Source: Salpingoeca rosetta
Taxonomy: Eukaryota; Protista; Choanoflagellata
Length of the DNA: 64,000 nt
Assembly (NCBI GenBank): GCA_033442325.1
Contig: JAWQFM010000003.1
Coordinates: 1,029,651 to 1,093,650 of the forward strand
Direction: 5' to 3'
Positions 4,373 to 50,881 of the stretch are shown here, in pieces; the stretch's first letter is position 1, and each line of letters starts with the position of its first letter. The notes below the pieces were generated by a model. It made no database searches. It was not told where the DNA came from and saw only the letters and a program-made list of their open reading frames with translations. A program made the position numbers and the translations under genes.

Positions 4373-4398
4373 CGAAATTTCATGGATATTTTCAGCAA
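4373..4398 (-). promoter_or_regulatory. Candidate promoter motif copy 1 (PIGV/QARS divergent region)
   Basis: Minus strand TTGCTGAAAATATCCATGAAATTTCG; fits TTGYTnAnnATnTnnnnnAAWTTTCS. Confidence 0.45.
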
Positions 4399-4654
4399 CT
4401 TCTCTTTCACGTGTGGATGGTGCGAGCTGTGTAACTGCTGCTGTTTGCGTGGCATGGCATGGTGGTGGTGCTGTGTGTGGTGGTGTGGGTGGCGCACACC
4501 TCTGCTTTGCTGTGCTGTGCTGTGCTGTGCTGTGCTGTGCTTGCGTTGGTTTGATTCACTTTCCTTGCTTGCTTCGCATCCACGACAACCCGCATTCACC
4601 TCGCTCACATCACGCGCACTCCAGGTTCAGGAGCACAACGAGTACAACGACATC

Positions 4655-7600
4655 ATGACAAGTGTGGCGGATAAGCTGAAGAAATTTGGCCTCAACGACT
4701 CCAAGGTCGTCGAGGTCGAGAAGAACAAGGTCACCACGAACGCCCTCCTCTCGTTCCTCGAGAAGGTGTGTATTTGGTGTGTTGTGGTGTGTTTGTGTGC
4801 AGAAGCTTGTATCACCTCGGAGCAGCGCGTGCGTGTACACACACGTGTTCGCAAGTGCTTCTATGTTTGCCTTGGCATCTCTGGATTGTCACATGCCCAA
4901 CATCGACTCACGCACGCACGCACACACACACACACACATGCACACACACACACATGCACACACACGCACGCACACACACCTACGCACACACACACACACA
5001 TGCACACACGCACACTCCCTCACTCCCTCACTCCCTCACACAACGCGCACACACACACACACTCGCTCACTCCATTCACCCCCACAGTATGGCAAGGATG
5101 AGCTGGACTCCGGTCATGCCACGCTTCTGTTCACTCTGGCCTCCTTGCTGCCCAAGAGCAAGTTCATGACAGAGGAGTACATCAACAAGCTCTACGACGC
5201 AATCACGTATGGTACCACGCACAGAAAGAGAGATAGTGTGTGTATGTGTGTTGGTGAGAGAGTGAGAGAGTTTGTGTATGTGCATGTTAACATGTGTCCT
5301 TCCGTTCCGGCAGCGACATTGAACAAGGCTGCCCCTTCGACCACCATCATTCGCGCCCATTCGCTCGCTCTTCTCATGTTACTTTGTGCGTTCCTTGTCC
5401 TTCTACGCTTGCGGATGTTGCAGGAACAACCAGATTACCATGAGGCCGCAGCTTGATGGTGAGCAGCTGCGCTCAAGCTTCCGTCTTCCCACATGCCTCC
5501 TTGATCTTGCTCCATTTTGCCTCCCTCTCCCCTCCTCTCCCTCACTGCCATATTGCGGCACCACCCCCACAAGCCTGCAACACAACGAAACGCCAGTGTC
5601 TTCAGCTCTCACCCCTCACTTTGCTCCGCGTTGCTTGGCTTCCCTCTGCTTCCCTTTGCTTCCCTTGGTTTTGGATGCCCTGTGCAGCTGCCCTTGCGTT
5701 TTTCCGCGGCTGCCGCGGTGACATGAGCGGATTTGAGTCTGCGTGCGGCATTGGCATCACTGTCACCGCCGAGGACATCACCGCTGCGGTGAAGAAGGTG
5801 ATTGATGACAACCTGCCGGAGCTCAAGAAGCAGCGCTACCGCTTCCCGATTGGCAAGCTCATGGGTAAGCAGCCGCCAGCGAAAGGTTGTGTGGGGTTTG
5901 GGATGGCGATTGCGTGGTGGTCGAGAATGGTGCACGTATGCATGCATGCAAGTGGCACAAGGCGTGCAAGTCGTGCATCAGTATGAACTGCACACACGCG
6001 CGCGCACACACGCACACACGCGCGCGCACACACCGCACATTACGCACTGTGCGCGCACCCGGCTTACCCAACGCGCTCACTCAAGCACACACGTTCATAC
6101 ACACACACATGCGCATGTGTTGGGCAAAGGTGGCGTGCGTGCGCTGCAGCCATGGGCGGACCAGAAGGCGGTGAAGGCCGAGGTTGACGCGCAGGTGCTG
6201 GCAGTGCTGGGCCCCAAGACAGAGGAGGACATGAAGAAGCCTGTCAAGACGAAGGTGAAGGATAAGAAGCCAAAGGCCGAGAAGAAGAAGAAGGACGAGC
6301 TCGCCGACACGCCCGAGGAAGTGACGTTCAAGGGCGCCGCAGCCAAGTTCCACAGCGTGGGCGAGAACGACCAGACGGACGGGTATGTGCTGACGCCCAA
6401 CACGGTACGGCTGCTGAAGGAGCACTACGACGCTGTCGGCGGCAAGGTGCACACGCGTTTCCCGCCCGAACCAAACGGTATCCTCCACATTGGCCACGCA
6501 AAGGCCATCACCTTCAACTTTGCATACGCCCGCGACCGCGGTGGCAACTGCTATCTCAGGTGTGTGTGTGTGTGTATGTGTGTGTATGTGTGTGTGTATG
6601 TGTGTGTATGTGTGAATGTCTAAGGGGGGGGGTGTTCTGTTACTTGTGGCGTAGTTGTGACGTGTGCTCACTGCTGTGACAAAATCATCTGGGATTGCCA
6701 GGTATGATGACACCAACCCTGAGGCCGAGGACGAGGAGTTTTTCCGGGGCATTCTTCGCGATGTCACGTGGCTCGGACACACCCCCTTCAAAATCACACA
6801 CTCCTCCGGTAAGGGCCGCACACACATGAACATGCACACGCACATACATACATGCATGCACGCACGCACGCACGCACGCACGCACACACACACACTCTCT
6901 CTCTCTATCTGTGCAACGGGTGCTCATGCGTGCCTGACCATGCTTGTGGTGCGCAGACTACTTCGACGAGCTGTACGCGGCCGCTGTTGAGCTGATCAAG
7001 CGCGACAAGGCATACGTCTGCCACCAGCAGGCCGAGGAGGTGTGTGCGTGGCTGTTGGTACTCCTGTTGATACTGCTGGGGGGTTGGGGTGGTGTGGTGA
7101 AGAGGCCGAACTTCGTGCGTGTGCGTGTGCGTATTTGTGTGTGTCGCTTCCGCCACAACCAAGACACTGACGGCCAAGTATTGTACCTTTTGTCTGCTCA
7201 ATGTTTGCCCACGTGTGTGGCGTGTGTGGCGTGTGCAGCTGAAAGGGTATGCAGACCGGAAGGAGTCACCGTGGCGGGACCGGCCGATTTCCGAGTCGCT
7301 GCAGCTGTTTGAAGACATGCGCCGCGGCCTCATTGACGAGGGCAAGGCAACACTCCGCATGAAGCACATCATGGAGGTGAGACATCTTCACGCACACATC
7401 CACATCCACATCCACACACACACACACACACACACACACACACACACACACACACACACATCTACATCCACACATCCACATCCACATTTACATGCACATC
7501 CACATGCATACGCACACACACATAAGCTGTGCGTGGTATTGGAGGGAGGTTGAGACTTCACTGGTGATGTTGCTGTTGTTGTTGTGTGTATGATGGCAAT

Positions 7601-50100: not shown

Positions 50101-50402
50101 TGGTGCTGCTGGTGCTGTCGCAGATTGTGTTTCTTGCGGGCGTCGTGGCATATGTGCAATGCCAGCACACGTGCTTCTACTTTATCACGTCGTGGGACAA
50201 GAACAACGCCATCATTGTCACGTGGTATGCGCTGGGCGCGGTGCTCTCCGGCGCGGGCATTGTTGCGCTGAGCAGATACGCGCAGGAGTCGTGTCGCAAG
50301 TCGCACGTGCTTGCCTGCAGCACGGTTGGCCAGCTCATCTGGCTTGGCCTGCAGGTTGGCTCCGTTATCGGCATTGCCGTCTCTCTCCTCAACGGCAGCT
50401 AA
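47122..50402 (+). CDS. Equilibrative nucleoside transporter (SLC29/ENT family), divergent
   Basis: [22 protein letters not shown] (ENT TM1), [25 protein letters not shown]; about 11 hydrophobic segments; N-terminal DETTPLL. Confidence 0.75.
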
Positions 50403-50855
50403 CACGTCGTTCTGTGTGTGTGTGTGTGTGTGTGTGTGTGTGTGTCTGTTTCTGTATGTGTGTGTCTGTCTGTTTCTGTATGTGTGTGTGTGCGTCTGTC
50501 TGTCTGTCTGTCTGTCTGTCTGTCTGTCTGTCTGTCTGTCTGTCTGTCTGTCTGTCTGTATCTGTATGTGTGTTTACCCTTCTGTGTGTGTTGCACGACG
50601 TGAGAGGCCAGATGCCAAGGATTGGTTACTTCTTCTTCTTTTTTTCTCCCCGTCCCCCTTCAACTTGCCTGCTTGACGGCTCGCTTGAAGTGATGTGACT
50701 GTTCGAGACTGCTTGTTTAACACTGCGCACAGCACTTGACACCACCACTGCTGCTGCTGCGGCGGCGTGCAACAGCTGGCGCAATGCAAACACGCATGAT
50801 TGTTCACCATCCATGCATGATTGTTCATTCGCGGCTGTTGTCCTTCCGCCGACTT

Positions 50856-50881
50856 TTGTTAACTATATCTGATAAATTTCC
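50856..50881 (+). promoter_or_regulatory. Candidate promoter motif copy 4 (upstream of TADA3)
   Basis: TTGTTAACTATATCTGATAAATTTCC; same spacing as the other copies. Confidence 0.45.

Follow-up and report, generated by a model that had tools for sequence, protein, structure and literature searches.

Several promoter elements described in other systems offer points of comparison for a sequence motif that recurs at gene starts of the choanoflagellate Salpingoeca rosetta and is represented by four copies in the stretch of DNA analyzed here, a 64,000-nucleotide segment of the S. rosetta assembly (C3:1029651-1093650; hereafter, the window). The Drosophila DRE (TATCGATA), which is bound by DREF, is a palindromic element of housekeeping promoters. 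The animal initiator (Inr) has the consensus YYANWYY, and the core promoter of the oomycete Phytophthora combines an INR with an FPR, the latter having the consensus CAWTTTNYY. In yeast, the promoters of ribosome biogenesis genes contain two characteristic words, RRPE (about GAAAAATTTT) and PAC (GATGAG). The vertebrate CGCG element (TCTCGCGAGA) is palindromic, belongs to TATA-less housekeeping promoters and is reported to induce bidirectional transcription (PMC6192621). In S. rosetta itself, the RFX X-box, GTNRCC-N0-3-RGYAAC, acts near the transcript starts of ciliary genes (PMC10530576). Neither that work nor the S. rosetta study that combines transposase-based sequencing of open chromatin (ATAC-seq) and histone marks (PMC12572184) names a general promoter motif. 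The original prediction, made from the letters of the window, presented the motif as an element that could not be recognized, and no description of it was found in the papers searched, which cover the genome of S. rosetta, its chromatin profiling and chromatin loops, and RFX.

The motif is real and genome-wide, with occurrences in several hundred places. The four 26-mers on which the prediction was based are present in the window at positions 4373-4398 (-), 30711-30736 (-), 43090-43115 (+) and 50856-50881 (+). The pattern that had been derived from them, TTGYTNANNATNTNNNNNAAWTTTCS, matches these four window sites alone with up to 2 mismatches inclusive; when 3 mismatches are allowed, one additional weak match appears. 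Shuffling the window 100 times with dinucleotide composition preserved yields 0 matches to this pattern, also when 2 mismatches are tolerated. This comparison is circular because the pattern comes from the same four sites, and therefore the whole assembly (55.4 Mb, 68 contigs) was examined for independent support, with the same pattern read backwards (reversed) as the control for the genome counts. As written, the pattern turns out to be over-fitted, with 8 exact matches in the 55.4 Mb, 4 of which are the window sites. With at most 2 mismatches, however, it has 225 matches vs 8 for the reversed pattern, and a refined consensus, TTGYTGAWGATWT-N5-AAWTTTCS, identifies 246 sites vs 3 with at most 3 mismatches. 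For a symmetric 30-mer, TTGYNGAWRAT-N8-ATYWTCNRCAA, the respective numbers are 109 vs 0 with up to 2 mismatches and 385 vs 8 with up to 3. Together with the coding-strand analysis described below, this genome-wide excess supports the claim that the motif is a recurrent element at gene starts.

Examination of the sites reveals that the element is an imperfect palindrome that consists of two 11-bp arms, TTGYNGAWRAT and ATYWTCNRCAA, with 7 or 8 unconserved bases between them; in the form TTGYTGAWGAT, the left arm matches the reverse complement of ATTTTCSGCAA. The spacing is rigid. When gaps of 2 to 9 bases between the two halves are allowed, the gap is 5 in 13 of 16 sites, 4 in two sites and 8 in one. 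The inner core, GAAAAT-N5..11-ATTTTC, is found at 44 sites vs 1 in the control, and the spacer is N7 in 22 of these, N8 in 19, N9 in 2 and N6 in 1. Counted from GAAA to TTTC, the prevailing spacings are N11 and N12, and N13 is found in 2 of the 44 sites. Thus, the motif is bipartite as originally proposed, in the sense that two parts are held at a fixed distance, but the 26-mer is not the full element, being an off-centre part of the longer palindrome.

For a profile of the element, 90 loci were gathered around pattern matches, and removal of one duplicate pair left 89 unique sites. Several positions that were never constrained during the collection are conserved in these sites, namely, -9 (T), -5 (G), -4 (A), -1 (A), 0 (T), 28 (C) and 29 (A). 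In the outer right columns 27-30, which were unconstrained as well, a perfect mirror of TTGY is present in 17% of the sites vs 1.5% of control positions. Columns -5, -4, -1 and 0 show a third arm, a degenerate direct copy (T...GA..AT) that is usually located 11 bp upstream; some loci (L025, L113 and L120) contain three clear arms, in tandem or inverted. The total length of the element is ~30 bp for the palindrome and ~38 bp with the third arm, and beyond about -10 and +31, the sequence is random in the 89-site profile. The arms are not equivalent in their preferences, with GAAGAT in the left arm and GAAAAT in the right one.

The halves of the element are also enriched singly in the genome (CAATTTTCSGCAA, 19 vs 0; ATTKGYTGAWGATWT, 16 vs 0; CAATTTTCS, 335 vs 76). 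Around half-anchored sites, the partner half can be present, degenerate, shifted by 1 or by ~10-11 bp, or absent, and right halves without a recognizable left half show a weak association with gene starts (21 vs 12, not significant). Specificity resides in the composite. A lone arm-like word, TTGTGGATAATTT, is located at 37715-37746 of the window, where it scores on both strands as a left and a right half. This word lies inside an annotated gene for an 872-aa protein, so single arms occur away from promoters, too.

The position of the motif relative to genes was assessed with a coding-strand proxy. A codon-usage log-odds table was trained on S. rosetta sequence that is confidently coding (1,234 codons), 20-codon windows were scored on both strands around the 89 sites, and a call was made for each site over 600 nt. 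The fraction of sense coding calls rises from 0.15 to 0.30 directly past the motif, and the upstream side is dominated by antisense calls. By this proxy, the downstream 600 nt are mainly sense-coding at 67 sites vs 14 that are antisense (p = 2e-9), and the upstream 600 nt are mainly antisense-coding at 59 sites vs 27 sense (p = 7e-4). The contexts are divergent at 44 sites, tandem pointing at the following gene at 20, tandem reverse at 8 and convergent at 6. Within the 44 divergent contexts, which have a median span of 287 bp, the median distance to the first coding call is 120 nt downstream vs 142 nt upstream, and 20 sites are nearer to the downstream coding signal vs 24 that are nearer to the upstream one, i.e., the motif is approximately central. 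The earlier statement that each copy points toward one gene is accordingly weakened and retains a modest directional bias in the tandem contexts alone (20 vs 8). The promoter location itself holds up; the extent of 26 bp does not, and the directionality toward a single gene is weak. Start calling by codon usage or by GC content at third codon positions (GC3) proved too insensitive to yield a distribution of distances, and base composition around the motif, with leaders that are CA-rich or GT-rich, did not place the transcript start.

The genes downstream of the motif encode GMPPB, PIG-V, a cyclophilin, Tsr1, ribosomal protein L3, an eRF1-like protein, an amino-acid permease, a methyltransferase and a DUF2452 protein; a leucine-rich repeat protein and a TIR-like protein are encoded downstream of other copies. 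This gene set is diverse, includes housekeeping types and does not comprise a single narrow regulon.

The four copies in the window (Table 1) are ordinary rather than strong members of the family. They differ from the symmetric consensus by 3-4 mismatches (3 in copy 2), and their full-profile scores are in the range of 25-42, the maximum possible score being 53. Copy 2 is the best of the four, and its opposite strand scores as well.

Table 1. Motif copies and associated start codons in the window (PWM, position weight matrix)
Feature	Coordinates	Strand	Full-PWM score	Remarks
Motif copy 1	4369..4408	-	34.5	Extended to model positions -9..30; precedes the PIG-V mannosyltransferase gene
Motif copy 2	30707..30746	-	42.0 forward, 24.9 reverse	Precedes GMPPB
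Motif copy 3	43080..43119	+	25.7	Precedes an open reading frame with a Q-rich N-terminus
Motif copy 4	50846..50885	+	24.9	Outer right arm GCAA included
Candidate PIG-V start	4306..4308	-		First ATG past copy 1, likely the start of the gene; short first exon
GMPPB conserved start codon (MKALILVGG...)	30660..30662	-		48-49 nt past copy 2
Start codon of the gene divergent to GMPPB (282-aa product)	30828..30830	+		Annotated; 91 nt from copy 2

The original prediction placed an ATG 25-95 bp downstream of each copy, in good agreement with the distances from the end of the motif to the next ATG, which are 64, 49, 24 and 94 nt for copies 1-4, respectively (the ATG past copy 4 is at 50976). Three of the copies had been assigned to divergent promoters, but by the coding-strand proxy, all four are in divergent contexts. 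For copy 2, divergence is backed by annotation, with the neighbouring coding sequence on one side and the GMPPB start on the other; the start codon of the neighbour (L031:9901-9903 in GCA_000188695.1) was mapped to the window via the GMPPB start. Protein searches were performed with single exons or pieces of open reading frames (ORFs) as queries. The GMPPB label was upheld, with an exon that is 100% identical to 'GDP-D-mannose pyrophosphorylase [Salpingoeca rosetta]' from the locus in GCA_000188695.1, and so was the PIG-V label, with the Pfam domain Mannosyl_trans2 detected in two ORF pieces downstream of copy 1. The TADA3 and PTB/CAP-Gly labels of the genes past copies 4 and 3, respectively, received no confirmation from the ORF pieces, which is irrelevant for the motif, and the protein search with the Q-rich exon past copy 3 gave no match.

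The NCBI model of GMPPB (386 aa) has its start within the motif, at an ATG located 23 codons before the conserved MKALILVGG start (the start region, 30660-30736 (-) in the window, corresponds to L031:10001-10073). The orthologues of this protein, 358-364 aa in length, begin at the conserved MKALILVGG and lack the 23 extra residues. The start in the NCBI model is probably mis-called and is not evidence on the transcript. A GMPPB that is 85% identical to the S. rosetta protein over the query exon is encoded in a metagenome scaffold (L033), in which AGAAATTTCATCAAATTTCT, a similar word of the GAAATTTC type, is found at L033:140-175, ~230 nt before the GMPPB ATG.

With somewhat more confidence than doubt, the four sites can be interpreted as copies of a promoter element of S. 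rosetta that acts at the DNA level and is recognized by a protein, a putative dimeric factor. The motif combines two-fold symmetry, fixed spacing and excess at the promoters of unrelated genes, the properties of a palindromic element bound by a dimer, and sequence rather than structure is conserved, given that mirrored positions show no excess of complementarity over shuffles. Under this scenario, a putative dimeric (or two-fold symmetric) sequence-specific factor would bind both arms, which would be about two helical turns apart and on one face of the DNA, and the third arm might serve as an additional contact or impose a bias in direction. The resulting complex would mark the middle of compact, TATA-less promoters of the housekeeping type, about half of them two-way, and transcription would start nearby, on one or both sides.

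Several considerations count against this interpretation. Collection of the sites with IUPAC (International Union of Pure and Applied Chemistry) patterns makes the constrained columns of the profile circular. The association with gene starts depends on a home-made codon-usage proxy with 1,234 training codons only, and a start-codon caller derived from this table gives a weak signal, the first ATG being coding-like on 42 of 178 motif sides vs 46 of 356 control anchors. A few copies sit in multicopy sequence. Furthermore, the GMPPB promoter of Monosiga brevicollis contains no copy of the motif, although this one orthologous locus proves little. Related transcripts from other organisms (L034 and L124) show no motif either, their 5' ends being uncertain.

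Of the other explanations, the one that survives best, possible albeit unlikely, posits that the general transcription machinery reads each arm as an initiator, so that the motif would be a mirror-image core promoter that needs no dedicated factor. Transcription of the downstream gene would begin at the right arm, (C)AATTTTCS, and that of the upstream gene at the left arm read as its reverse complement, so that two transcript starts ~20 bp apart would be fixed by a single 30-bp element. The right arm fits the initiator consensus YYA(+1)NWYY, with positions 17-23 reading Y (70%), Y (64%), A, W/A, T, T, T, a match to which the looseness of this consensus lends little weight, and positions 17 and 18, both unconstrained, are pyrimidines in 62 and 57 of the 89 sites, respectively (p = 3e-4 and 0.01). 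The single enrichment of CAATTTTCS reported above is also in line with the initiator model, and copies of this word with a degenerate or missing left half sit just before CA-rich leaders and ATGs; nevertheless, the right-half-only sites as a set are weakly tied to gene starts. An ATG is present within positions 1-17 in 41 of the 89 sites; transcription of the whole motif would burden the leaders with an unusual number of upstream ATGs, which makes it plausible that sense transcripts begin at about position 18 or later. At some sites (e.g., L094), a strongly coding frame has its first in-frame ATG only 2-7 nt past the motif, which makes it unlikely that transcription begins downstream of the motif at these sites. 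The genome also has inter-ATG gaps of ~100 bp. Several points in the sequence favor a sense start at or just past position 18. What speaks against the initiator model is that the information spread over ~38 bp, with the third arm, exceeds that of any known initiator, and that the preference for GAAGAT on the left vs GAAAAT on the right is not expected of equivalent initiators. A 12-mer that may lie at an mRNA start, GTCAATTTTGCC, resembles a piece of the element.

A bolder variant, which deserves still less credence, is that the 30-bp mirror element would be a complete two-way core promoter, with outward-facing initiator arms, a third arm that biases direction, and back-to-back pre-initiation complexes ~20 bp apart. 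If true, this would be a TATA-independent architecture for which no precedent is known among animals, fungi or other protists.

Lower again in probability is a chromatin or architectural element, such as a boundary, an insulator, a nucleosome-excluding or a replication-related sequence, that co-locates with promoters and has no direct role in initiation. A long, symmetric motif that occupies the middle of intergenic gaps and shows no link to a particular gene class is compatible with such a function, but nothing specifically favors it, and the motif largely avoids gene bodies and convergent gaps (6 of 89 sites), which a pure boundary element need not do.

It is very improbable that the motif functions as RNA, i.e., as a hairpin of both arms in the 5' untranslated region that affects translation or stability. 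With G-U pairs admitted, one arm can pair with the other (GAAGAU with AUUUUC), and start codons are close to the motif. Nevertheless, there is no covariation between the mirrored columns, which, as stated above, pair no better than shuffles; position 8 is T in 32 of the 89 sites, opposite an invariant T at its partner, position 23; the ATG within the motif in 41 of the 89 sites and the central location in divergent gaps, whatever the strand, do not fit a hairpin, either. A search of the window against Rfam at the gathering score matched no family.

The least credible proposal, that the motif is a mobile-element remnant comprising the paired terminal inverted repeats of a promoter-inserting miniature transposon, is in keeping with the palindromic form, the hundreds of copies and the few 26-mers that are identical at three loci each but conflicts with the 7-8 internal bases and all flanks being unrelated between copies, the lack of target-site duplications at six tested boundaries, the single duplicate pair among the 90 loci, and the variation of the arms, which retains the consensus rather than a copy history.

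Two motif 26-mers are each identical at three loci, one at C4:998671, C14:438036 and C29:223628, and the other at C23:280130, C33:587740 and C33:630481; the C4 copy (L039) adjoins a stretch of N. The promoter element may be carried by mobile elements or by multicopy genes at these loci.

Several known elements were considered and rejected as identities for the motif. A TATA box is not compatible with the 70-column profile of the 89 sites, which contains no TATAWAW and reads T...GA..AT at positions -9..0. In a heat-shock element recognized by HSF, the units follow a 5-bp register, from which the motif departs, with GAA (positions 6-8) and TTC (12-14 and 23-25) being 3 nt and 14 nt apart. The RFX X-box has half-sites separated by 0-3 bp, compared with 22 bp between the outer ends of the motif, and the downstream genes are diverse. 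The consensus sequences of forkhead, GATA, NF-Y and ETS sites do not match the 89-site profile.

Other features of the window and of related loci are worth recording. An ATG-to-ATG gap of 111 bp separates two annotated divergent genes (L031:5398-5510, window ~35223-35335), which shows how compact two-way promoters are here; the scan of the window scored no copy of the motif in this gap, so other promoter signals must exist. Gene structure in the window is characterized by numerous short exons and by introns rich in (GT)n. The (GT)n/(CA)n microsatellites that fill the introns (window 28700-30600 and many others) keep long ORFs open, with translations of the CVCVCV or HTHTHT type, and therefore ORF length is no sign of coding here. 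A large exon at 18800-21019 (+) of the window (L031:18598-23402) contains Bact_surface_Ig-like (PF16403) repeats; it is part of an annotated gene for a big cell-surface protein of at least 1112 aa, with weak matches to Ephrin_rec_like and TNFR_c6. Elsewhere in the genome (contig C17, ~478 kb), an apparently intronless ORF of 437 aa (L025:1553-2863 (+)) follows three tandem TTGTTGAAGA arms. The best relatives of its product are metagenome TIR-domain (PF13676) and WD40 proteins, with 50-56% identity over one third of the query, and the protein search found no S. rosetta self match. This ORF may be a bacterial-type TIR gene in a choanoflagellate.

No living organisms are more closely related to animals than choanoflagellates, among which S. 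rosetta serves as the genetic model. A long palindrome with rigid spacing at ~400 or more gene starts would offer a handle on compact, often two-way, TATA-less promoters just outside animals and would be relevant to the origin of animal gene regulation. It could be used as bait for its putative factor and as a defined part for S. rosetta expression constructs. If each arm is an initiator, the motif would represent a new kind of bidirectional core promoter.

The S. rosetta element shares with the CGCG element and DRE a palindromic sequence, association with TATA-less promoters of the housekeeping type and the presence of hundreds of copies near gene starts. However, the CGCG element and DRE are contiguous words of 8-10 bp that contain GC or CG, whereas the S. 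rosetta element is AT-rich, ~30 bp long and split into 11-bp arms with 7-8 free bases between them, has a third arm, and shows no sequence similarity to either. The right arm, (C)AATTTTCC, fits the animal Inr and the FPR word and, like these, is found within ~100 nt of start codons, but it belongs to a longer symmetric element, the INR half of the oomycete core promoter is absent, and the lineages are distant. Similarly to the X-box, the motif is palindromic and promoter-proximal, in the same organism, and its outer TTGC...GCAA(C) recalls the X-box half-sites; the differences are that these outer ends are 22 bp apart, the inner GAARAT/ATYTTC has no counterpart in the X-box, and the genes are not ciliary. 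Finally, like RRPE and PAC, the motif places AT-rich GAAAA/TTTTC and GATGA-like words before growth and housekeeping genes, some of which are involved in ribosome biogenesis (Tsr1, an exosome subunit and ribosomal protein L3). It departs from the yeast words in that GAAAAT and ATTTTC are 7-8 bp apart and flanked by fixed outer TTGY/RCAA, and that the genes served extend beyond ribosome biogenesis.

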